From assembly GCA_905178155.1 (NCBI GenBank), contig CAJINV010000003.1:8411444-8475443 (forward strand): a stretch of 64,000 nucleotides of DNA, written 5' to 3'. The DNA comes from Amoebophrya sp. A120 (taxonomy: Eukaryota; Protista; Dinoflagellata). Made by a program: the position numbers and the translations under genes. Numbering within the stretch: position 1 is the stretch's first letter; the number at the start of each line of letters is the position of its first letter. Below are positions 47,031 through 64,000 of the stretch, piece after piece. The notes under the pieces are model-generated. The model saw only the letters and a list, made by a program, of their open reading frames with translations, searched no databases and had not been told where the DNA came from.

Positions 47031-49043
47031 TATTAAATCCTAGGTAGGATCTCAGCAATATCGCAGAACACGCTCCGACGATAGGAGCCAGACAGGTAGG
47101 ACCCTGGTCGATTCGCTCGACCAAACTCATAGCACGAACCTACCAAAGAAAAGCGCTCCAGAATTGTCCCGCTTCAACACATTGAGCGAATTCCTTTGAT
47201 TCCTCCGATCGACTACCATCGACCCTCTGACTTTTCTCAAGTAGTTCCTCTCTTCCTCTCTCCTCCTGGTGCCCTCTGTTTCTACTTTCTAACGCTAGCA
47301 CGCTACAGAGCCCGCAAGAACGATGCGTCAGAAGAATTCACCACAGATTGTGGCGCATGCTTCTGACCACCATTGTTAATTGTGGCGCATGCTGTTTGTT
47401 TCAGTGATGCGCACCGGTATCGCTACCAGTGTAGCGATTCCGGTTTTTGCATCGTTTTTTTTTGTTTATTTTTTCCAGTTTGCGGCTCGCGTGCCATCCG
47501 AATTTTTAAAAAAAAGGAAATCGCCGGCCGTCCGGAATGCGGGAAGCTGTGGTTTTTGAAGCAGGGCCACAGGATGATCCAGCATTACGTCAAGCTACAT
47601 CTTCTGCCGCGTTTTATGCAATTTCGCAAGACACACACCACAGCACACCTCGTGCTGCTGCTCGACCTATCCCGATGATCTATTCCTTTACCGTACGCGA
47701 TGACGTGACGTAGTCCCTAGGTTGCAGCCAATAGCCTGCTGGGCTGCCGGTAGGTCGCAGAATCTGTTCACAACCTGCCTCCTGCGCGCTTGTTTTTTGA
47801 CTGCCGCCACCCTGCCGCCAGGCATGCCGCCAGGGGGGTTGGCGGCAGTTTACCAGGATGGTATGGCGATGTTCGCCAGGTGCCGCCGAGCAAATTTGTA
47901 AAAAGAAGAATATTAGATAATCAAGTTTTTTTTATATTTTCTGTGTTCGGTGACGGCGGCCATCGCCATACCATCCTGGTAAAGTGCCGCCAACCCCCTT
48001 GGCGGCATGACTGGCGGCATGAGGGGGGCCCGCAGTTATTTTTATAAGCTGCGGGGGGCGGGGGTCCCCGGGGGTCTGCGGGGGTCTGCGGGGCTCGATT
48101 CATTCTAAAGGAGAAAAAAACAAAAGATGTATTATGTTTGTCAATCACGGTGGGACTCTAGCGTTTTGCAAGCGCCATGGAACTGCCCATAGTGCCACCG
48201 CCGTGCTCTTTGTGCGGCGCCCTTGTGGCGTATTTGTAACTGCTCGGTGCAGTTTTTGGGATGGCGGATGCCACCGCCAGGTGGCATCTAGGGGGCCAAA
48301 AATTCCTGCATGCGTGTCCTCCACGCGGGCGGCCCCTGGGTGCGTCGTTGTGGTTGTTAATTGTGACAATCGCAGCCCGCAGCTAACGGCTCAGAGCTTC
48401 TCCGGACGGCTGAGCCGATGCATGCAGGTGCCAGAAAAGTGAAGCAAAGTCTTGCTGTTTCTGGGCGGGCGGGGAGAAGAAATGTTTAAAGTTGGGAACA
48501 CTGAAGAAGGACATGTGGTGTGAGTTACTTTCGGTATAGACAAACCCCCGTAAGATTATTTCAATTACATTGAAGCTGCAACTGTGCTTTGCGCATGGCA
48601 AGTCGGTGAGTTGTTTTTTCGTTTGGGCGTATGAGCAGGCACCTTATTTAGTTTCGACTTCATGCACTACGTATGCATGAGTATGAGATGAGCAGAAGTT
48701 TGCGAATTTTTTATTTTACGCACGGCAAATCATGACTTTTTTATTGTACTCAGGGTCTGAGTCGGTTGCTCCTGTTTCTTTTGGTTGGTAGCTTTACAAT
48801 CGCGAAGTCCATGTTTTTTTTCCTTTTTTTTGTGAATTCGGTGTCGTTTTCTCGTGGTGTGTATCTCTATCTTGCTTGGAATCTCTACTGCTACTGTTGC
48901 TATTCCTTGTCCTTATATACATTCAGTTCTCAGCCCGCCCGGCTACAGTGCTCTACTCAAGCTTCCATTTAGGATTTTGCTTTCTACTCCGACTTTAGGA
49001 CTTTCCTTTCTACTCAGACTTTACCACTACTTCGCTGGCAATC

Positions 49044-52020
49044 ATGAAAAGGAGCGGCAGCAGCCCCGCGGCGATTGTCAGCACGGCCGTCGGGAGGAGC
49101 GGGAGCACGCCGGTGGAGCCGACGCGCCGCCCGGCCCGCCAGCTCCGCCCCAGCTTCGCCCCAGCCTCGCCCCCGCCGTCTTTGACGTCGCGCATGAAAC
49201 AGGAACACGCGGCGGCGGCGGTATCCTTTGCAAAAACACCCCGCCCCATTCCTGCCGTGCGTATTTGCATGCCCGGGCCAAACTATTTGGCCTGCCGCCC
49301 GCGTATAGGCTTTTTTGATGCTGTTTGTAACTTTCGCAACGAGGAGCAGGGCAGCAATTTGTCATGCGCAAGGGCCAGAATTTCTTTGCAGTTGTGATAG
49401 AGGTGCAGTCTTGGCTGTGGGGTGGGGGGTTTTGTCCAAAGGATGGCAGGCAGAGCCGTTATCTATTGCAAAAGAATCAAACTAGTACGAATTGCTTTTG
49501 CATCTGCATCACATCAAAGGTCCGCAGCATTGGTAGCGGAATTTGTGATGCGGGTTTGCCTTCAGAAAATAAAAACTTATATTTGTAACGCGTGACAACT
49601 GCAATCACTATGAGTGCGATACTTTTGCACAGGATGCCCGCTGAGTTGCGACGATTTCAGCACCTCGTCTGACGACGGACGGTATCAGGTGCAAAAGTGT
49701 CTGGGTCTGGAAGCGCCAAACTTGTGATGCGCATTTCAGAATACAGAAAAATCTCTCATGCATAGGTCGCAAAAGCTGCACACTTTCTGTCACCAAAATG
49801 AGGAATTTGTCATGCGGATTCGGCAGTGCGGAAGCTTGTCGAGACCTGTGACGCTAGAGCTTCCATGCCACACCTTCTGCGCCATGAAAGCCAGCATGTT
49901 TTTCCAGACCCAGACCCTTTTACCTTTGATATGCTCGCCGCGAGCTCGATGTCAATCATCAGAACTATCCTGTGTAAAAACGTCCCCACCCCATAGTCAA
50001 GTTAGTAAATCTGGAACACAAATTTCCAAGTTTTGGGAGTTTTGCATGACAAGTTTCCATCTGTATTGTCGTGCTGTTTAGCAAGGACAGCCGCATGAGA
50101 AAACAAGCCTCTCATCCTGTTCACAGCATTACAAAGTCCAAAACAAGATTGGAAATGCCTCTCATGCTCATCCGCATTACAAATGTTCTTGTCATTGCAC
50201 ATTTGCATGACAACTCTGGGGTGGGGACGTTTTTACACAGGATAAGAACGGCCAAAAAGTCATCCCGGGCAAAACCGCTGAAAAGACCCGCCTCCCCGGG
50301 CGAGTTGCAGTCCCTGTGGACGATTCTCGCGGGCCATGGTATGGATGTGTCAGAGTTGAAATCAGCAGAGTTGAAGTAGAGATAACTTGTAATGCATAAA
50401 ATCGATGCCAGTTGCAAGCCCAATGTCTACGCGGCGCATGACAAAGCTGAGTATTTAGAGTCAGAATGCAGTTTGTAACTCTCTTAGGGCAAGGAGGACG
50501 CCTGTTGTCATGCTGCTTGAGCAGCTCTTTTTCTACCCCGAAACAGGCTCACAATCTGCCTCCCTTGCCTACTCAGCAAGACAGGCATTTTATGCATAGC
50601 AAACTACTTCAACTTTGACGATTTCAAACCTGACAGCTCCATGCGTGGCTTTGTGCGCCCTTCCTCGCCCCTGGCGGGGAAGGGGTGCATTTGCCGCCAC
50701 TGCGGGTGTATGCAATGCAAAAGCATCGCACTCGTATACTAAATGCATTACAAATTTCCTCTGCGTGAGACATAAGATTTGTAATGCGGATTTACCTTGT
50801 TTATAAAAAAAACCTCTCGCGCGATGTTGCTACACAATCGACGGGGTTAATAAACAAACTGCATTGCTCGTGGAAATAGGTCATTTTTGAAAGTTCGAGT
50901 TGCAATTTTACATACGATGCTAGCTGTTTCTTCTAAAAACTATCGCTCGTTACTACACTAGTTCTAATTTACTACATCAAGGAAATTTGTAATGCATGAT
51001 TGCAATTACTACGGGTGCGATATTTTTGCGCAGGATAGGGTTTGCGGCGACCACCAACACGGGAGTTGCAAAACTAAGCTACAGCGAGAACGATAAGCGG
51101 CACACCTTTACCGGGGCAACGGACGGCCGGAAGGTTTTGGTGTACGATTGGCAGCTCCCCTATGAAAGTGCCCAGCGCCCCCGAGCCCGCATTTGTCAAG
51201 CAAAAGGCAACGCATGATAATGATGATGATGATGAAGGCACTACTTGCGTGACAGATTCCCGAATCCAAAACAGCACTACGCTACGTAGTGCTATTCGTA
51301 GAAAGTTGTAGCGCAGTCTGCTTGGAATTTGACACACAGAAGCTGCATCTTTGCCAGCGCTTGTTTTGCTGTTCATGCAACCAACACAAACGAGGGGGAG
51401 GGGGTGTGTGCACTCTGATACCCACGAAGAAGAGCGGGGCGGGTTTATCCTGAGTAAAAGCGTCCCCATCCATGAGCTGTAATTGACTTTATTTTGGTCT
51501 CTGGCAGTACACGAACACGAACACCCCAGAGCTCCTGTCATGCAAATTTGCAACGACAGGAACATTTTTGTTTGTAATGCTGTAAACAGGACGAGAGAGT
51601 GGCTTTCTCATGCGGCCTCTCTTGCCAGGCAGCACTACACTGCACGGGAAAACTTGTCATGCACAGCTTCCAAAACTTGGAGATTTGTGTTGCTAGATTC
51701 CCTACTTGACGATCATGGGGCGGGGACGTTTTTGCTCAGGATAGGACTGGGGGAAGGGCCTATGGCGTTCTCAAATGTTACATTCTCCTCTGTTGCATGA
51801 TTTGTCATGCAAAAGCGCCATGTATGATCATCTACACGATCAAGCTGTTCTGCATGACAAATCCTGGAAGGGCCAAACAGGATGATAATCTGTGCCAAAT
51901 CTGTCATGCAAGACGCGTAATGCCCCCCCTTTCACTTTTCCCACTCTTGCATCACAAGTCCATGTAACAGTTGAGAATGTAACAGTTGAGAACGCCATAG
52001 GGCCGAAGCACAGGTTTTGA
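49044..52020 (+). CDS. 190-aa hypothetical protein in 10 exons separated by 9 introners
   Basis: Elements 49222-49445, 49460-49636, 49683-49931, 49966-50244, 50340-50643, 50709-51037, 51161-51420, 51446-51743 and 51761-51999. Exon sum is 573 nt, open from ATG to TGA. Contains CICRHC. Confidence 0.75.
49966..50244. mobile_element. Introner family F, 279 bp
   Basis: TSD AGAAC/AGAAC; 27-bp TIR. Confidence 0.92.
50340..50643. mobile_element. Introner family E
   Basis: TSD CATGG/CGTGG. Confidence 0.85.
50709..51037. mobile_element. Introner family B
   Basis: TSD GGGTG/GGGTT. Confidence 0.85.
51761..51999. mobile_element. Introner family G (TATGGCnTTCTCAA)
   Basis: TSD GGGCC/GGGCC. Confidence 0.9.
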
Positions 52021-52104
52021 GTAGGTAGAGATTTTATACAGCGTTAGAAAGACTACATTACTTTTGTAGAAATAATAAAAATAATGTAGTGTAGAAATAA
52101 TAAA

Positions 52105-53590
52105 TCCTCAGCGTTAGAAAGGGTGTCTGTAGTCACTACAGACACCCTTTCTACATCCGCATTACAGATTCCGTATTACAGCCATCCGCATTACAGATTC
52201 CATTTCTGCAAGCGTTGGAAATGGAATCTGTGATGCGGATTTTCCTCAAGAAGTTCTTGAGGCAAATCCGCATTACAGATTCCATTCCTAATGCTGAGAC
52301 TTCTTGGGGGATTTGTCTCAAGAAGACTTCTTGAAGCAAATCCGCATTACAGATTCCATTTCTAATGCTCCTGAGGTGCTAAAGTTATTTCTTGAGGCAA
52401 GTCCGCAAATGGAAATCCTCAGCATTAGAAAGGGTGTCTGTAGTCACTACAGACACCCTTTCTACATCCGCATTACAGATTCCGTATTACAGACATCCGC
52501 ACTACAGATTCCATTTCTGCAAGCGTTGGAAATGGAATCTGTGATGCGGATTTTCCTCAAGAAGGTCTTGAGGCAAATCCGCATTACAGATTCCATTTCT
52601 GCAATTCGGCTTGTGCAAAATGTTGAAATGGCCATTTCAACAATTCGGGTTCTGCGAATTGTTGAAATGGCCATTTCAACATTTTGCACAAGCCGAATTG
52701 TTGAAATGGCCATTTCAACAATTCGCAGATCTCGAATTGTTGAAATGGCCACTTCAACAATTGAGTGATGTGTTTTGCATGACATATTCCCAAAATTAGA
52801 ATCAAAAACTTGATGCGTTTTGCATGACAAATTCCCAAATGCGGAAATTTGTCATGCAGTTTCAATTTGATGCGTTTTCCATGACAAATGTCCAATCCAA
52901 AACGGAAATTTGCCATGCGCTTTTGTATTGCCGTCTCTACGGCAATAGCAATACAAAGTCCCTCAGCCTCAGCATTAGAAATGGAATCTGTAATGCGGAT
53001 TTGCCTCAAAAAAAAGCTTATGCCTTCAGCATTTATTTGCAATGCAATCTGCGGATTTGCCTCAAGAAGAGTCTCCTATTCTTTCTTGAGGCAAATCCAC
53101 CAAGCTACAGACTCCATTTCCAATGCATTACAGATCCTGTTTCTATTGCTGATGAATTTCATTTGCGGACTTGCCTCAAGAAAGAACTTGAGGACTTCAG
53201 CACTAGAAACGGAATCTGTAATGCGGATTTGCCTCAGAGAGTCTTCTAGACATAAATCCCTCAAGAAGTCTTCTTGAGACAAATCCGCATTACAGATTCG
53301 CTTTGCAATGCTGAGGAATTCCATTTGCGGACTTGCCTCCAAAAAAAGCTTTAGAGCTTCAGCATTAGGAATGGAATCTGTAATGCGGATTTGCCTCAAG
53401 AACTTCTTGAGGAAAATCCGCATCACAGATTCCATTTCCAATGCTTGTAGAAATGTAATCTGTAATGCGGATTTGCCTCAGGAACAGGAACTTCTTGAGG
53501 AAAATCCGCATCACAGATTCCATTTCCAATGCTTGCAGAGATTGAATCTGTAATGCGGATTTGCCTCAAGAACTAGCATCACAAATTCGC
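52105..53590. repeat. Complex direct/inverted array of ATCCGCATTACAGATTCC units with hairpins and a central 39-bp-period palindrome array
   Basis: >20 GCATNACA/TGTNATGC motifs. Hairpin AGAAAGGGTGTCTGTAGTCACTACAGACACCCTTTCT occurs twice. Palindrome TGTTGAAATGGCCATTTCAACA occurs 4 times (52621-52760). Confidence 0.9.
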
Positions 53591-55024
53591 AAGCTCATGA
53601 TAAAAAGTTTACTTGAATCGACTCCAGTTCTTGAAAAATAACCAGCTGTCAACTTCAAAATAGCAGTACGTGGAAAATAGAACAACCGGTAAGCGCTTTA
53701 CAGTTTTGACTTTTTACAATTTCAATTGCAACAGAGGTCCGCCACAAATTAGAATTTCAGATTTTACAATACTAGACTGCTTACTTCTGGATTTAACACA
53801 AACAACTTCAGAATTTACAACTTTCGACTCACCTACTTGGATAGGATGTGTACAGAAATTTTACTTCCCCGATCCACAGATACGCAGCGACTGTATCCAT
53901 TTGTGAAAGTGGAAAAGATGCTGCTGTTCTGTTTTTGGGGTCGTAGCTACGTCAGCTCCATCTCGTAGAAAAACTTTTTTGGATTTCTCGTATGTAGCAG
54001 CTCGCTAGCGTCAGAAAGAGCAAAGTTCTCGCTCATTGGGATAAAAACAATTCGTAGTCAGACCAATATTTCTATTCGTCGCACTACGTACAAAATGCAT
54101 TACAAATTACCACAGAAAAGCACACGAAAACTTCACACCGAGAAGAACCCTGAACCGAAGCCAATTGCTGCCTCGACGAGAAAACAGGAATTTTGTTTTT
54201 TGTTACCTCTATAGTGTGAAAGCAATAAGAGGACGCCAAGAAGGGCGGGAGCAGAAGTATTAACTTGCGGGAAGCAAGTGTTTTCTACGATTGTTCGGAG
54301 ATATCGGCTAAAAGAGATTTGTATGGAATTTTCAAAAATAAGTCTCAAGTTCCGGTATAGTGTCGCCTACCTCAGTTCGGTGCAGCTCTTTTCTGTTTTT
54401 TTGAAGTCGTAAAAGACCACAGTGACTCTAGCAAAGAAGATACTCTGTCGCTTTCGTCTTTCATCATTTTGGTTTATTCTTTAACGATTTTCGACACCGC
54501 CAGCGCTGGATGGTATCTTGTTTGTTAAAGAGTAACTCCTTTTTTTTCTTCAAGTCGTGTAGTCGTTCTTCGTGTCGAGCCAAGCTCTTCAAGAAAGACT
54601 ATTGCCGCGCTCGTATGTCTTCATCGTCGGGGATTTTTTTTGGGAAATAGAAAGCATTTTTTCACAAAAGTAAAATGCTCTATGCCTGTTGCTTCGGTGT
54701 TGATCCTTGCTCTCTGATCGTTGCCTCCAGGCGCCCTATGGTCGTTGCGATCGGTGTATTCTTCTACCCCTCAATACTCTCCCCGCGCCGAAGTTTCTAA
54801 TGCACAGCTTTCACCGAGTTCAGTTTGTTGCTTTACTACTACTACTACTACTAACTCCTACGTAGATCCCCCTGTTGTTAATTACTACTAGTACTACTTT
54901 AGATTCATTTCCCGCGTTATATTTATTTACTAGAATTAGAACCCTCAGCGCTAATACTGTATGTAAGTAGAGCAGCCCTCCCGCCACTCCCGCATATCGC
55001 TTTGATTGCGTAGCATCCCAAGAA

Positions 55025-58000
55025 ATGGCCGCGGCCGCGAAGGGCAAGTCGGCCGCGAAGATGAACACGTCGCGCGTATCAAAAGGAAGCGGCCCCCTTC
55101 CCCATATCGAAAACGACATTTGTGATGCGTTATTTGAGTACACTAATAAATAGACTTGTAGTGCTAGAAGGCCAAGAGCCGCAGTTGTGGCCTCGCTTGC
55201 AGGCCATTTGTCATGCTGTTTCCTGCTTCCAGCTGCCTCCTGTCATGCTGAAGATGCAAGGCTTCCCCACGCCACCCAGCACTACAGTCCCCATCTTTTA
55301 CCTTCTAGCGTGAAGCTGCATCACAGATTTCCGTTTTGATATGGGGAGGGGGGCGCTTTCTTTGTGATACAGCGAGCCGGGCGATACGCTCCTGCCGACA
55401 CTATCGCAGGAGGCGCAGATGAAGAAGAGTAACGCAGGCAAGAAGACTATCCTATGTAAAAACGTCCCCACCCCATAGCTGTCATGCAAATGTGCAGTGA
55501 CAGGAAGATTTGTAATGCGCATCTCCATGAGAGGCACTTCCAGTCGTGTTTTGGAATTTGTAATGCTGTAAACAGGATGAGAAGCTCGCTTTCTCATGCG
55601 GCTGCCCTTGCTAAACAGCACTACGCTACAGATAGAATCTTGTCATGCAAAACTCCCAAAACTTAGAAATTTGTGTTGCAGATTTACCAATTTCACTATG
55701 GGGTGGGGACGTTTTTACACAGGATAAAGATGAACAAGAAAGATGAAGATATCAATCTGGACCTGGACGTATACGACAGCGACTTCGGGCTATACGACTC
55801 GGCTCCGGGCGACGATGGCGGCAAGGCTAGCGGTGGAAGATCGGCGCCGAAGAACAAAAAGCCGGCAATACGCAAGGCAAAAGTATCGCACTAGTACTAG
55901 TATGCGCCGCATATACAAAGACTCACTTCGCTCGGCATGACAAATGGACTTTGTGATGCTGCTTTAGCTTTGGACTCGGGGGAACGTTGCGACTTGTGAT
56001 GCATATCGCTATCAGCAAGAACGAGCGCGCGTGCCCACGCGATACTTTTCCAAGGCATAGACAAAGAAGAAAAACCAATCCTCCACATCATCTCACAAGA
56101 GCTTTAACGGAAGACAGCAAGCCATGAAGATGGTGAAGGGGCGGTCACAGGAAAGCTCGAGGAAGAAACAACTCCGGACGGAGCCCCTCGTTTTCCTGTC
56201 GGAGCAGCTGTACTGCGAGGAGGTCTCCGACGAGGAGGAGGAGGGCGTGGGCATCGAGTTTCAGTATGTTGGGCAAAAGTATCGTGCTCTTATTGCAGTC
56301 ATACACTACAGAAAATTTCGTTCTATATATAAGGTCTTAATCCGCATTACAAATCGTGTTTCGTCTCATGCTGAGAGAATTTGTAATGCAGTTATGCGAG
56401 TGCGATACTTTTACACAGGATATTCAGACGTCGGAGGCAATGTCCCGCATGGTCGACCGCTTCGTCGGCGGTAAGGACAAGGGCCGAAAGGCGATCGATA
56501 TCTTGCAGCAGAGCGACCGCGGCGAGAAGTGCGCGGACTGGTTCATGAATCTGTTCACCAACAAGGAAAACCGAACTATTGCAAACCCGACCTTGCTAGA
56601 GTGGTGCCAGTGGGATGTTTTCAACGTGAACAACGACCCACACCAGAACCGGCCGCTGAACATCGTGCTGTCCTGTAAGTACTGTGACGCAGGAACCGCA
56701 CACGACAAAAGGCTGAGAAACTTGCAAAAGCGCAACGCGGCCTCAAGCTTCGGCAACGGGACGTTTGTAGCGCTGCAGGAGGCCCGGGACTTCCAGCGGA
56801 AGTCTGCTTGCTTGTCTATCCTGAGTAAAAACGTCCCCACACCAGAGGCAAGTTGGCGACTTAGCAACACAAATCCAGAAGTTTTGGGAGCCACGCATGA
56901 CAAGTTGCAGTCCGTAGTGTAGTGCATGTTAGCAAGGAAAACTGCATCACAAATCCATCTTCTCATCCTGTTTGCAGCGTTACAAATTTCAAAACGCGAC
57001 TGGTAATGCCTCTCATGGAGATGCGCATTACAAGTCTTCCTGTCATCGCAAATCTGCATGACAACTCTGGGGTGGGGACATTTTTCCTCAGGATATTTTC
57101 CAAGATGCTGGAGTATCAAGTGTAAAAATGTCTGGGTCTGGAAGTAGAATGCAGCTTGTGATGCTGCATTTGGATTCCAGAAAAATCTGTATTGCGTGAG
57201 TACCAAAAGGAATGCAAGTTTTTCTACGCGAAGAGGGCATTTGTCATGCGGAATAGGCATCAAGAAGGTCTCAAAAAATCTGTGAATCACGGACATCAGG
57301 GCTCATGCAAAACGTGCATGACAAGTGTCAGAATCTTTCAGACCCAGACACTTTTACAATCCATATGGAGCACGAGGGGCCTGTGCACCAGAAAGCAAAG
57401 GCGAACATCCAGAACAAGAACAAGATTCCAACCTTCAAACGTCCAGTCGTCGAGGACAAAAAGCGCGCGAAAGCGCGCATTATGGCCCGGCACGCCTTGA
57501 TCAACCTGAAACAGGCGGGGTCGCATCCTTCCTGGAAAATGCATGTCGAGGCGACCTTATCCTATGGAAAAACGTCCCCACACCCCAGGACTGTCATGCG
57601 AATCTACACGCCCCGAGTGTTTCTCATGCGCAGTCCCCTGCGAAGCATTTCTAGCTGCCGTCTTGCACTCTGTCATGCTACAATTGGGGAGCGGGGTGGG
57701 TGCCTACGTTTTTCCTCCTCATAGACCTTCGACGAAGCTGTGGGCAAGGACCTGTACGGCACGTCAGTCGGCTGGAGCGAGTATAGTGCCTTGAAATCTT
57801 ATGACAACGAAACTCCGCGCCGGAGTCACGTCCGAGGCTTTTTGTGAGGCCTGTGGGATCTGTAATGCGGATTTGCCTCAAGAAGACCTCTTGAGGGATT
57901 TGTCTCAAGAAAACTTGTTGAGGCAAATCCGCATTACAGATTCCATTTCTAATGCTGAAGTGCCAAAGTTCTTTCTTGAGACAATCCGCAAATGGAATTC

Positions 58001-61000
58001 CTCAGCATTAGAAAGAGGATCTGTAGTGCGGATTTGCCTCGAGAAAAGTGCCGAGCTCTTAATTTTTTTATTTTTGGAGGCAAGTCCGCAAATGGAATTG
58101 CTCAGCATTGCAAATGGAGTCTGTAGTTCGAAGTTGCCTCAAGAAGACTTCTTGAGGGATTTGTTACAAAGAAATCCCTCAAGCACAGACGTTTTGTGAG
58201 GCTACAATGTAGCCTCGCAAAACGTCTGTGCTGCGACTGTGGCGCGAGAGTTCGTTTTCATAAAACCACGGCGTGCGCAGTGTGCCGAGACGAGGTCTAT
58301 GGCATTCTCAACCGTTACACTCTCAGCTGTTGCTCGGATTTGTGACGCAAGAAGCGAAACAGTAAAAGGGGCAAGCTTGCAGCTTTTGCATCACAAACTC
58401 GGCAAAAACTTTTTTTGATAGGCGCCGTTTAGCCCTTTGGGATTTGTCATGCGAGATAGGTTGATCGCCTGGTGGCCCATGGCAATTCTGCATGACAAAT
58501 CCAAGTAACAGCTGAGAGAGTAACGGTTGAGAATGCCATAAGGCCGACGCGGCAATTGCAGGCACCGCGGCGCTATCCTGTGCAAAAGCATCGTGCTCGT
58601 AGTAAATGCAAACATGCATTACAAATCTTGCTCTTTAGGTAAATCCGCATTACAAATTTCATTTCTCATGCTGAGGACATATGTAATGCATTTTTACGAG
58701 TGCGCGTGCGATGCTTTTGCATTCCATGGGCGCCGTATCTGCTGCAGGCGGACGGCAAAAATGGGAAGTTGTCCGCCTTCCTGTTTCTCGACGTCAGGTA
58801 CCAAGTGCAAATGTGTTAGTCTGGGTCTGGAACATTGCGGCCATGTTGCTCCTGGGTCGTGCAAAAGTGAGAATATTTGCAGTATGGATGTCAATAGATG
58901 CCCACCCTTGGCCAAGTTGGCAGGATGTTTCTCATGCAGGAGAGGCGTGATAGATAGGAGCATCAGCGTCACAGAATCTGTCATGCTCGGCGACGGGGGT
59001 CATGGAGCATCTGCGTGACAAGTCTCGTAATCTTCCAGACATATTTGCATTTGATATGAGGGGGAAAAGCCAGTGGGTCCACATTGGATCCGCCACTCTA
59101 GCGAAGACAAAGAGTGCCTACGACACGTATGAAGCCATCTACATATCGATTGCAAAAGTGTCTGGGTCTGGAAGGATCAAACTTGTAATGCTATTTCCGG
59201 ACTCTAAAAAATGTGTTGCGTGACAGGCAATAGGAGTCCAGTTTTTGCCACGTGGAGAGGGCATTTCTGATGCAGGATATGCATCAAGAAGCACTCAGAA
59301 AATCAAAAGTGTAATGCTAGGGCATGCATCACACACAGCCGCAAGGGGTCACGTCAGATGTGCATGACAAATCTTCCAATCTTCCAGACCCAGACACTTT
59401 CGCAATTCACACTACAAGATCCTCTACGACTGCGGCATCTCATGCGAAGAGATCGGCTGCCTCATCATGGACGGCGCTGCCGAGCTCGGCCTGGCGCATG
59501 CCGACAAGAAGATTACCATCAACACGAAGGCGCTGAGAAAGCTCGGGTTTTCTGTCGGGGCGAACGACGATCCGAACTCGAAGAGTTACGTTTTGCCGGT
59601 AATTAGGGCGATAGAAGACAAGGAGAACGACCCGGAGGATAAGGCGGTCGTCCCCCCAATTTCGGAGAAAGACTCGGAGCACCTGAAGAGCCTGTTGGAG
59701 TTTTTTCAGAAGCACAACCCGCACGTCATTGGTATCTATTGCAACTGCCACAAGTTGGACAGAATACTCGAGCCGGTGCTCCGGAAGTCCGAATTGGTGC
59801 AGGCGGTGCAGAAGGAGATGATGTCGCTGAACGGTCTCTGTAAAGGCGGAAAGGGGTCCAAAACATTATCCGCAGCGGGGAAGCTGGTCGTGGCGATGTC
59901 CACCTTCGTGGATGGCCCAATGGCCACGGTGTCGCAGCTACCATGTGCAAAAATGTCTGAATCTGGAAAAAATGGAATTTGTGATGCTGACTGTCGGCGA
60001 TGCAAACTCGCAAAGTCCTGTATTGCATGACCAACAAACGGAGCTCAGTTTTTTGCTATTCTGAGAAGGCATTTCTCATGCAGTATAGGCATGGGAAAGC
60101 CTTCACAAAATCTGTATTGCTACAGCATGCATCTTTACCGACATTGAAGGTCATGTAAAATTTGCATGACAAACTCCCCCAAAGGGGGAGGCAAAGTGTG
60201 CTGCACTTCTGTTTAGCATGACAAACTCCCCCAGACCCAGACATATTTGCAGTTGGTACCAGTTCGAGGTGATTTTCATGCGGTGGCTGTACCTCTTGAC
60301 GCCCATCAAGTCCGTGCGCACCCATTTGGCGAGCATCCTCCTCGCCGCGACCCGGATTGCAAACCCCGCGTACACCGGCAACGCTACAACTTCGCAACAA
60401 TGGGAGGAGAAACTGAATTTCTTCGGGCAGGTCCACATAATGGCTTTCATCAGCAGTCTCGCGGACTTCCTGGGGCAGTACCGAAAGATCACGGCGGTGG
60501 CAGAGTCGGAGGAACTGAGCCTGCAGGAGTCGGAAAGCAAGGCCAAGCAGCTGGCCGACAAAATACCAAGCTTCCTCCGGGACATGACGGCCCATTGGGC
60601 GGATTTGGAAGCAAAATTTATCCCGGAGAACAAACGGAAACTGAAGCCGAAAGCGCGGAAGATGGTCAAAGAGCACAAGCACGTCGTAGATCTGGAGATA
60701 GAGGCCAACCCTAACCAAACGGCCGGCGTCCTCCATGTCCGGGATAACGAGGGCGAAAGAGATACCTTCTGGAAAAACGTCTCCACCCCACCCCATCTTC
60801 CTTTTCTGAAGAACGCCTCTTTGTGTTTTATTTAATATGTATAATGGAAACTTGTCATGCGCTATGCATACACAGAAATGTGGTTAGTATGGGTACTAGC
60901 ACTACACACACTGCAGACGAAAACTTGTCATGCGCAGATCGCTTTTTAATGCGCATCATACATATTGGGATACCAAGAGAGCGCCTCAGTATCTATGGGT

Positions 61001-63865
61001 TGGGGATCGACGTTTTTACTCAGAATAAAGGACGACGCGAAGCGCGTGCACGTGAAGTGGTCCCATAAAGAGTTCCTGTCGGCGCACGAGGATCTGACGG
61101 AGCTCATCAGCAGCATGCGGACCGGTATCAACAAGCGGTACGGTGGAAGCTCATTCTTCCAAGTGATGGCAAACGTCCAGGCGCAGCTGCACAAACTGGC
61201 GGCCGCGGACGATGACGAAACGAAAACCGCCCTCGACCACCTGGCGGTGCATGTGCTGGGCGCCGCGAGGGACGCGGGAAACAAGATGAGCAAAAAGTAC
61301 AAGTCGTGCCGCGAGGACTTGGAAGATGACTACAAACTGTTACTCCAGCAGCTCGACGACGCGGGGAGCAAACCGGCGAACCGGTCTTCCCTGGTATCAA
61401 ATACAAAAGTGTCTGGGTCTGGAAGGTGGGGTTTTGTAATGCCAGCTTTGAACTCATCTAACAAAACCTGTATTGCATCACCAGCGAGAGAGGTATATTT
61501 TGCGCCACGCGGGGCGGGCATTTGTCATGCGGAGTAGGCATCGGGAAGCCCTGCAGAAATCTTTGATGCTAGGCCGTGCATTACAGACGTTCTGGACCAT
61601 GCAAAATAGGCATGACAGACCCGCTCTCGATCCGCTTGCACTTGGCGAACTTGGCCAGCTCCGCCAGGTATCAAGTGCAAAAGCGTCTGGGTCTGACCAG
61701 ACGCTTTTGCACTTGATACCTGGCGGAGCTGGTCAAGTTCGCCGAGTACAAGCGGATCGAGAACACGTTCGTGAACTTCTTCTACATCGCGACAAGGGCG
61801 GTGGTATCCTGTGCAAAAGTATCGCGCTCGTGCAAATGCAAGTTTAGCATTACAAATCTTGTTTCCAAGGCAAAGCTGCGCTACAAATTTTATTTCTCAT
61901 GCTGAGGAAATTTGTAATGCATTTCCACGGGTGCGATACTTTTGCAATGCATAGGTGGCTTCGTCTGCAACGGCGGAGAGGTACCAGAAGTACCTCGGAC
62001 AGGTGCGGAATCACATCGAAAAACGCCCCCACCCCCTGCCCCTTGGGCCCAGCCCAACCCTGCCCCTTGGGCCCAGCCCCACCCCGCCCCTTGGGCCCAG
62101 CCCCACCCTGCCCCTTGGGCCAAGCCCTACCCTGCCCCTTGGGCCCAGCCCCACCCCGCCCCTTGGGCCCAGCCCCACCCTGCCCCTTGGGCCCACCCAG
62201 GCCCCGCCCCTCCCCTTCGGCCCAGCCCCTGCCCATGGGGCCCAGTGGCGCGGGGTTTTGTCGTGCCCCAATCAGCGTGGCGCCCTCCCTAGGGTTGTGA
62301 CTTTGCTGGGTTTGCTTCCCAAGCAGGATCGCACTACCATACGGGGCCAAACTGGTCACGCGCATGCCACGGCCAGAGTTTAGGCCGGTTCATAGATAGA
62401 TTTGTCTAGCAAATTCCCCATCGTGGCTATGGGGCGGGGGCGTTTTTGCTCAGGATATGCGCAATCGGTACACTGAGAAGGAGATCGAGGCGCACTTCGT
62501 CGCCTCGTATATCGGCAAGGGCGACCGCGAAACGCTGCAGCGGCTCACGGTCAAGGTCGCCGAGGCATATGTGGCCGAGAGGCCCCGGCGGCTCGTCAGG
62601 ACGAGGCAGCGGCCGTCCGGGCTGACGTACGTGGTACGAGTTTCTTTGTTTTTCGAAGCTATGCGTAGTATGATAAATTGCGGTCTAGCACTACCATAGG
62701 TTGGCTCTTTCTGCGTATCTAGGTTTCGGAATATATTGAAGCGCACACTGGTACATAGGCCCACTCCTGGCGTAAAAAAATGCGAATGTTATTGCGTCTA
62801 CTCGCGGCCAGCCCCTCACTGAGCCTCAACCGCCCTCAAAAATACGTCTCTCGCAGGCCCGAATGGGAAAGGACGAGAAATTTCGCAAAACCTACGGAAT
62901 TGCCGCGAAGGAGGTGATACGCATTGCAAATATTTCTGGGCCTGGAAATTTGTCATGCCGGGTAGCGTGTCATCAGGGGGCCACAACAAGTGCTGGCTCA
63001 GCATGACAAGTTTTTGTGTTGCCTATTCCGCATTACAGGGCTTCTAGTTGTTGCCTATTCTGCATGGAAAGCTGCGCTTCTGCGTGGCAGAAAAGTGGGG
63101 CTCTTGGGTAACGTGCATGACAGATTTGCATGACAAACATGCATTCTTCCAGACCCAGACATATTTGCATTGGATAGGTGATTAAGATGTCGAGCTCGCT
63201 GCAGTTGGAGGAGCTCCCCAACGACAACGCGCCGGTGCCGCTGGGTGAATATGGTTCCAAGGACAAGCAGAGCGATCCGGGGGTGGAGGATAGTGACGTG
63301 CAGGTGATCTCTAGCAAGAAAGAGGAAGACAACAGGGACCAGAAAGTACCGGGGCAGCGGGAGACGGGGGCGTCCGCGGACGTTTTATCAAGTGCAAATG
63401 TGCCTGAGTCTGGATGAAAGCGAGATTCGAACTTGTCATGCCATTTTTCCAAGGTCCTGCTCCAAAAGGCCTGGGGTGCCGGGGCCACTTTGTGCTGCTT
63501 ATTCTGCTTCCAGACTTAGACACCTTCGCATCCCATACGCTGACATGCAGGACGTGGAGGACGAGGATGAGATAATGGAGGACGCGCATTCCCAGCCAGT
63601 ACAGCACGAGGCCGAGGAAGGCTCTTCGAGCTCGTCGTCCGTGGACGAAAAGTTTGTGGACGCGATGGAGACGCTGATGGAAAAATACTCTGAGGAAAAA
63701 CAGCAGCATGACACGCACACCACAGAGACCACGTTGGCGTGGGAGGGGGATTTGTACACGAGCCAGATGCGCGAAATCCTGGACAGGGTTGGTATGTACG
63801 ACCACTGTGGGCCGGATCGTATCAAGTTCGTCGTCAGGAAGAGGAAGAACAAGAACAAGGCGTGA
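55025..63865 (+). CDS. hAT-superfamily DDE transposase (TTF/BED-like zinc finger, ZMYM1/ZNF862-like architecture), 1199 aa, 21 exons
   Basis: Spliced CDS is 3600 nt with no internal stop. Zn finger CKYC...HEGPVH; D1 in YLLQADG (58751); D2 in [12 protein letters not shown] (59470); YCNCHKL (CxxH); MRWL; C-terminal [10 protein letters not shown]...VRNRY (E at 61976). Introns: 19 TIR elements + GT-AG 62634-62856. Confidence 0.85.
55077..55369. mobile_element. Introner family D
   Basis: TSD GCGCG/CAGCG; frame kept. Confidence 0.85.
55448..55726. mobile_element. Introner family F, 279 bp, opposite orientation to 49966 and 56817
   Basis: TSD AAGAC/AAGAT. Confidence 0.92.
55869..56059. mobile_element. 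Introner family B
   Basis: TSD GGCAA/GACAA. Confidence 0.8.
56265..56422. mobile_element. Introner family B
   Basis: TSD TTCAG/TTCAG. Confidence 0.9.
56817..57095. mobile_element. Introner family F, 279 bp
   Basis: TSD TTGTC/TTTTC. Confidence 0.9.
57114..57365. mobile_element. Introner family A, reverse orientation of 11650-11902
   Basis: TSD TGGAG/TGGAG. Confidence 0.92.
57558..57723. mobile_element. Introner family F (short)
   Basis: TSD GACCT/GACCT. Confidence 0.88.
57800..58262. mobile_element. Introner family H (TATGAnAACGAA), interior homologous to the 52.1-53.6 kb array
   Basis: TIR TATGACAACGAAACTCCGCGCC / GGCGCGAGAGTTCGTTTTCATA; frame kept. Confidence 0.8.
58298..58540. mobile_element. 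Introner family G
   Basis: TSD AGGTC/AGGCC; 20-bp TIR. Confidence 0.9.
58574..58728. mobile_element. Introner family B
   Basis: TSD GGCGC/GGCGC. Confidence 0.88.
58799..59056. mobile_element. Introner family A
   Basis: TSD TCAGG/TGAGG. Confidence 0.85.
59144..59411. mobile_element. Introner family A
   Basis: TSD CTACA/CTACA. Confidence 0.88.
59939..60258. mobile_element. Introner family A (TAC...GTA termini)
   Basis: TSD GCAGC/CCAGT. Confidence 0.82.
60763..61027. mobile_element. Introner family F (diverged)
   Basis: TSD AGAGA/AAGGA; frame kept. Confidence 0.78.
61395..61718. mobile_element. Introner family A with internal fold-back duplication
   Basis: TSD CCTGG/CCTGG. Confidence 0.88.
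61805..61953. mobile_element. Introner family B
   Basis: TSD GGTGG/GGTGG. Confidence 0.92.
62009..62457. mobile_element. Introner family F expanded by a 24-bp C-rich tandem repeat (62030-62245)
   Basis: TSD TGCGG/TGCGC; unit CCCTGCCCCTTGGGCCCAGCCCCA, ~7 copies. Confidence 0.85.
62918..63176. mobile_element. Introner family A
   Basis: TSD GGTGA/GGTGA. Confidence 0.88.
63386..63537. mobile_element. Introner family A (short)
   Basis: TSD CGTTT/CGCTG; frame kept. Confidence 0.8.
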
Positions 63866-64000
63866 GAGCAAATAGGTGCACTACCATCGTGATTGGCATT
63901 TTTGTCCTAGATAAGACTGAAAGTAGAAAAACAACCACCAACGACCTAAGGCTGAAAGTAGCAAAGCACGAAAGTAGAAAACGGACCATCACCCACCGCC

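Follow-up and report, generated by a model that had tools for sequence, protein, structure and literature searches.

We analysed a 64,000-nucleotide stretch of the Amoebophrya sp. A120 genome (contig CAJINV010000003.1, positions 8,411,444 to 8,475,443, forward strand; hereafter the window, numbered from its first letter), which revealed that positions 55025 to 63862 hold the first 21 exons of a real, transcribed gene of 22 exons, the last of them beyond the window. Nineteen of the 20 introns between these exons are introner elements, and the gene lies between the two ends of an 8.4-kb repeat, here called R, that has near-identical copies elsewhere in the genome. The reading that we favour, and to which we give even chances, is that this is an introner-cut gene for a divergent hAT transposase and that the locus is, or recently was, a transposase-bearing version of R. 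What is new is an introner host gene resembling a transposase in a strain without reported transposases.

Gene model, splicing and introner introns

The features on which the gene model rests are as follows.

55025-63862, + strand: coding exons 1-21 of the hAT-like gene, equal to residues 1-1199 of the public protein P0001 (exon coordinates from the initial annotation of the window)
61395-61723, + strand: intron 15, an example introner with TATC...GATA ends and a perfect CCTGG repeat
62634-62856, + strand: intron 18, the sole plain GT-AG intron, without inverted ends
63863-64000, + strand: start of the last intron, with a TGA at the donor; a gap of 1355 N bases follows directly after the window
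55447/55732, 59938/60264, 62008/62463 and 63385/63543: junctions with unequal repeat copies (introns 2, 13, 17 and 20)
58798/59062, 61804/61959 and 62917/63182: introners that can be read as GT..AG (introns 11, 16 and 19)

Joining the 21 exons from the window sequence gave 3600 nt, an uninterrupted frame of 1199 codons closed by a stop, just as the initial annotation had predicted. The gene is already annotated in the public record, though unnamed: P0001, a 1205-residue entry from Amoebophrya sp. A120 titled "unnamed protein product", matches it, and exon 13 is identical throughout in that protein (phmmer against 1.84 billion proteins). Direct comparison of P0001 with the joined 21-exon model left the differences T42M, L617F and Y1093D, along with six additional C-terminal residues. 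The gene is therefore not cryptic, as the initial annotation had called it. Every exon is single-copy in the genome, which answers the question of copy number that the initial annotation had raised (genome-wide searches covered an assembly of 115,520,608 bases).

To evaluate splicing, we compared the 6000 letters at 57870-63869 with contigs (Logan) of two sequencing runs, X1 and X2, which we guess to be RNA; 0.35-0.36 of the words of that stretch are present in them, and exons make up 0.41 of it. Two further RNA runs, compared as raw reads, gave no alignment there and have no bearing on splicing. These contigs skip all 12 testable introns (9-20), each at exactly the predicted length (248, 160, 263, 273, 325, 270, 329, 154, 454, 223, 264 and 157 nt); for introns 1-8 the support is the public annotation. 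The predicted junctions were right in length, and the rule behind them, removal of each element plus 5 nt, needs a small correction: at the informative introns 2, 13, 17 and 20 the true cut falls 1-2 nt further upstream with the length unchanged, following the third or fourth base of the direct repeat. Where the two repeat copies are unequal, the RNA takes its early repeat bases from the upstream copy and its last one from the downstream copy, and the cut therefore lies inside the direct repeat. T42M, L617F and Y1093D all fall at junctions whose two repeat copies differ. The TGA at 63863-63865, initially taken for the stop codon, coincides with a splice donor: RNA contigs match the window to 63862 and then continue for 830-885 nt, and the annotated last exon, which encodes HSRFYI before the stop, is found about 3.3 kb further on, past the N gap and outside the window.

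Nineteen of the 20 introns start with TAT or TAC (one with AAT) and mostly carry ATA before a 5-nt repeat. Between 18 and 29 of their 30 terminal bases pair, against 10 of 30 in the GT-AG intron 18, which bears out the initial division into 19 TAT...ATA introners and one ordinary intron. Their 5-nt direct repeats are perfect in nine cases and agree at four of five positions in five cases and at three of five in another five. Across the 5241 nt of intron we counted 52 occurrences of the octamer TGTNATGC, where 0.64 would be expected, and the 3600 nt of exon contain a single one. In the one introner family that was checked, that of intron 15, there are at least 813 candidate copies, and those scored are 81-84% identical to intron 15. 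We thus find inverted end repeats, direct repeats across the boundaries and, for introns 9-20, exact removal from RNA. Non-canonical introns of Amoebophrya ("introner elements") have been described with inverted repeats of 8-20 nt and direct repeats of 3-5 nt (PMC7789003), and those of A120 have been assigned to diverse transposon classes, with tens possible per gene (PMC12130899); the split architecture of our gene is ordinary for this genome. Because introns 11, 16 and 19 read GT..AG once the cut is shifted by 1-2 nt within the direct repeat, some of these introners may be ordinary spliceosomal substrates.

Element R and the position of the gene

The window holds the left part of R, and further copies lie elsewhere in the assembly.

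48033-48048, + strand: left terminal inverted repeat (TIR) of R (CAGTTATTTTTATAAG), at which three large copies and a 190-bp miniature inverted-repeat transposable element (MITE) begin
48058-48093: GCGGGGGTCT subterminal repeats (decamers) at the left end of R
48033-54993, + strand: left part of R (region A, array, region B), 99-100% identical to the copies at C13 and C3:8.81 Mb
52105-53590, no strand: array of palindromic modules with the octamer TGTNATGC, part of R, about 1.45 kb long and 1.4 kb upstream of the gene
G000:C13:2871185-2877933 and G000:C3:8806239-8814633: solo copies of R, 99-100% identical
L031:140-330 (G000:C1:16317939-16318128): the 190-bp MITE, consisting of the left 96 bp and right 93 bp of R at 100% identity

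R is a low-copy DNA transposon with CAG...CTG ends, GCGGGGGTCT subterminal repeats inverted near both ends and 6-bp target-site duplications (TSDs). It begins CAGTTATTTTTATAAG and ends CTTATAAAAAAGGCTG; its right end reads CAGCCTTTTTTATAAG on the opposite strand, and 13 of the 16 bases of its TIR match. The TSD is perfect in two of three testable insertions, as ATATAG around one solo copy and as TTATCC on either side of the MITE; there is no clean target duplication at the C13 copy. The usual hAT TSD is 8 bp long. Groups with 6-bp (hAT6) and with 5-bp TSDs (hAT5) are on record (PMC12730594), the latter as the initial annotation had noted. R has the short TIRs and subterminal repeats of a hAT element, and its 6-bp TSD is as in the hAT6 group. 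We read R as a hAT-style cut-and-paste element that was copied recently.

Similarity between the window and the other R copies ends at 54993, 31 nt 5' of the ATG at 55025, and gene-specific sequence begins at 54994; all other R copies run past this point into a common 1071 bp. Downstream of the gene and the N gap, a duplicate of 53175-54993 is followed by those 1071 bp (L003:3316-4386), together forming a partial R copy. This duplicate, B', matches the C13 copy perfectly, and a single base and a 3-bp indel are all that separates it from the upstream B. Of R ends, the locus contains exactly two, a left and a right one. The last coding exon, as annotated, falls at the internal B'|C join of R in the downstream duplicate, and our gene is the sole transposase-like gene seen in any R copy.

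Several side observations concern R itself. The other R copies show assembly gaps where the array lies, that of the C13 copy at L025:7073-7772, and the assembler was evidently unable to cross the octamer array, leaving gaps at window position 64000 (L003:145-1499) and at the C13 array. Both this array and window positions 49044-52020 ("gene that is 80% introner") lie within R, and intron 8 of the gene (57850-57970) shares a palindromic module (GGAATCTGTAATGCGGATTTGCCTCA...) with the 88-bp repeats of the upstream array (53366-53573). Coding-looking sequence adjoins the MITE. Both flanks of the C13 copy (8 kb) read as open coding sequence, and R may there sit within an exon, in which case it would need removal as a very large intron.

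The hAT-like protein and competing readings

Candidate functional residues of the protein, and a partial paralog, map as follows.

58751-58753, + strand: candidate first catalytic Asp, D400 (exon 11, YLLQAD), placed by motif context and its 61-residue spacing to D461
59470-59472, + strand: candidate second catalytic Asp, D461 (exon 13)
59740-59751, + strand: CxxH motif, C551-H554 (exon 13)
60281-60286, + strand: RW motif, R623 W624 (MRW; exon 14)
61961-61981, + strand: SSATAER with the candidate catalytic Glu, E937 (exon 17), and basic residues at +10 and +12
L019:2330-3004 (G000:C2:4716329-4717003): partial paralog, matching only residues ~704-1013

Conserved features of hAT enzymes include a DDE triad, a CxxH motif, a Trp in the insertion domain and basic residues past the Glu (PMC4763223). 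D400, D461, C551-H554, W624 and E937 occur in the protein in hAT order, as placed by motif rather than by alignment or fold, and we propose D400, D461 and E937 as candidate catalytic residues, accompanied by the CxxH at 551-554 and W624. Searching the ESM Atlas with residues 400-1010 returned neighbours that were all hAT (PF05699, DUF4371 and FAM200-ZBED5 RNase-like; score 0.91), and residues 370-700, which exclude the C-terminal motif, returned hAT RNase-like families (score 0.89), although scores of about 0.9 are also reached by 4-10% of shuffled proteins, so that these neighbours are leads and not proof. From the ordered motifs and the Atlas neighbours we consider it likely that the protein is hAT-like, and probably it is a very divergent, transposase-like hAT superfamily member whose closest relatives are of the Buster/ZBED5/FAM200 type. 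The initial annotation had called the hAT signature established; the motif order and the Atlas neighbours speak for it, and Pfam, PDB and profile searches found no relevant match.

The paralog on C2 is 39% identical to the protein across residues 840-985 and is uninterrupted at the sites of introns 15-17. It carries SSGGAERAQKFLRGVRTKY at the site of the SSATAER motif, so the C-terminal motif region around E937 is present and kept there, although the Pfam PF05699 model does not match this region; Pfam found no family, PF05699 included, in the paralog's uninterrupted C-terminal piece. A 701-bp piece of the paralog is duplicated at C3:3.05 Mb (L020:3661-4038) with 99.1% identity, and R-like ends were not found around the C2 paralog. 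A metagenome contig, L024 (JACKZZ010005079.1), offers a further comparison, its first 593 nt being 98.3% identical to window positions 61118-61710, intron 15 included, with seven differences in exon 15 (six synonymous and one non-synonymous). Since the remainder of L024 maps to another locus (G000:C10:1109731-1111570) at 90%, the contig is probably chimeric; it could have been joined via an introner, or alternatively the gene could be far more alike between strains than the C10 locus is.

A number of results weigh against the reading that we favour, some concerning the protein and others the locus. Pfam matched no family at E<=1 in the whole of P0001 and none in ten exons taken singly, and when all six frames of the genome were searched with the PF05699 and PF14291 profiles, there was no match in the window and one weak, unconvincing match elsewhere. 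The phmmer search with exon 13 against 1.84 billion proteins returned P0001 itself and a low-complexity match, P0002, and nothing else; word-based homologue searches with residues 400-1010 and 895-1000 likewise returned only P0001. The PDB held nothing relevant to P0001, its sole phmmer match there, PHF8, being spurious. Because the spliced protein also escapes Pfam, divergence hides the gene as well as exon splitting, to which alone the initial annotation had attributed its being missed. The first Asp, D400, has no Trp at +2, unlike Hermes. No BED finger is recognisable, and Pfam found no zf-BED match in P0001; the CxxC..HxxxxH zinc finger initially described is unsupported, its two half-motifs, CxxC (237) and HxxxxH (289), being separated by 49 residues. 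This separation is wider than is usual in BED fingers. At the level of the locus, no matching TSD surrounds the composite R that holds the gene, and GGCGT stands at its right tip in place of the GGCTG of the other copies. The N gap of 1355 bases separates the gene from the downstream part of R, and this gap, the absent TSD and the altered tip together leave room for a host gene that lies between two truncated copies of R. Finally, B and B' are so nearly identical that the arrangement must be young, whereas the introners of the gene look old.

These points bear differently on the alternatives. That the protein is no transposase but a fast-evolving, lineage-specific protein with hAT-like motifs arisen by chance is unlikely in our view: the empty searches of Pfam, PDB and 1.84 billion proteins would be expected of such a protein, and shuffled proteins do reach comparable Atlas scores, but the ordered set D[GN][AG]...CxxH...RW...S[SA]xx[SCA]ER with hAT-like spacing appeared in only 1 of 300,000 shuffles of P0001, a rough figure given that the pattern is loose, has four motifs and was picked after the sequence had been seen. 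The two Atlas queries also gave hAT sub-domains fitting each part of the protein, the C-terminal motif is kept in a paralog at 39% identity, and the element around the gene has TIRs and is of hAT style. Another unlikely reading would be that of a domesticated hAT-derived host gene, kept by selection for a cellular role, that has ceased to move any element and for which adjacency to R is secondary. It would suit a single-copy gene that is expressed and precisely spliced, with an excess of synonymous over non-synonymous differences (6 versus 1), and a protein of about 1200 residues with long charged N- and C-terminal extensions, above most hAT transposases in length; 19 introners, with the checked family of intron 15 diverged to 81-84%, suggest long residence as a gene, and a composite without a TSD and with an altered right tip fits as well. 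On the other hand, near-identical R copies and a 100% identical MITE call for a recent transposase source, no other transposase-like gene was seen inside R, and even very large protein sets yielded no orthologue, where a conserved host gene would usually have one.

The initial annotation had gone further and proposed the gene product as the master enzyme of the introner system, mobilising the TAT...ATA elements with 5-bp TSDs so that its own expression would hinge on their removal. From the sequences at hand this is very improbable, and nothing that we found supports the gene product as the introners' mobiliser. One could cite for it that 5-bp TSDs are on record for one hAT group (PMC12730594), that the introner octamer also builds a 1.45-kb array whose distance from the gene, on the upstream side, is 1.4 kb, and that A120 yielded no transposase in published work (PMC7789003). 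However, the element that carries the gene differs from the introners in its CAG...CTG ends, its GCGGGGGTCT repeats and its TSDs of 6 rather than 5 bp, the array belongs to R and not to the gene's own flank, and relatives of intron 15 are 81-84% identical compared to 99-100% among R copies. Judged by these ends and duplications, the gene is more likely to encode the transposase of R than the mobiliser of the introners.

Under the reading that we favour, this locus is, or recently was, the gene-bearing and transposase-encoding version of R, and both kinds of shorter copy, the solo ones of 8.4 kb and the MITE, would be its non-autonomous derivatives, as Ds is of Ac. Recombination between its two duplicated regions could have produced the 8.4-kb copies, and an internal deletion the MITE. 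The introners are removed precisely from the RNA of this gene, with the cut within the 5-bp direct repeat, and the protein would act on the ends of R.

Significance and comparison with known systems

Farhat et al. (PMC7789003) found putative transposases only in strain A25 and not in A120, and took this to rule out a general movement of introners by transposases. Were an expressed hAT-type transposase indeed to lie in a recently copied TIR element of A120, that argument would weaken, for transposases could be present in this strain yet invisible to standard searches; the gene is of interest because it reopens the question of transposases in A120. The locus also pairs one concrete protein with candidate DNA ends, those of R, in an organism that has undergone massive intron gain. 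A bolder extension, that A120 hides working hAT-type transposases, which profile searches miss because they are extremely divergent and are also cut into small exons by introners, and that this one or another spreads the TIR- and TSD-bearing introners, seems to us improbable, and if true it would overturn the published exclusion of transposase-mediated mobilisation in A120.

Compared with the Buster/ZBED5/FAM200 branch of hAT transposases, for which Hermes provides the reference structure, the A120 protein has candidate motifs (first Asp, DGA, NP..HC..H, RW, SSxxAER and basic residues) in the same order and spacing, a long insert separating the putative second Asp and Glu, and Atlas neighbours that are all hAT. 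It differs from that branch in having no Pfam or PDB sequence match, no recognisable BED finger, an insertion of about 85 residues between the second Asp and the CxxH, no Trp at +2 of the first Asp, and a length of about 1200 residues, above most. With domesticated hATs of the Kat1, ZBED and GTF2IRD2 types the gene shares being single-copy, expressed, constrained and hAT-like, whereas its position inside a recently copied TIR element and an orthologue search that found none set it apart.

R resembles hAT6 and Ac/Ds-type families in its CAG...CTG ends, short subterminal repeats and 6-bp TSDs, and in having near-identical shorter copies plus a 190-bp MITE. It departs from them in that the copy with the gene is internally duplicated over at least 1.8 kb, is broken by an assembly gap, lacks a TSD and differs at its right tip, and in that the link between protein and R ends is one that we infer. 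The introns are like the introner elements already described from Amoebophrya (Farhat et al. 2021, PMC7789003; Gozashti et al. 2025, PMC12130899), with the same repeats, the same exact removal and many introners per gene; to these the introns themselves bring nothing new, and the novelty lies in their host, a transposase-like gene in a strain for which none had been reported.

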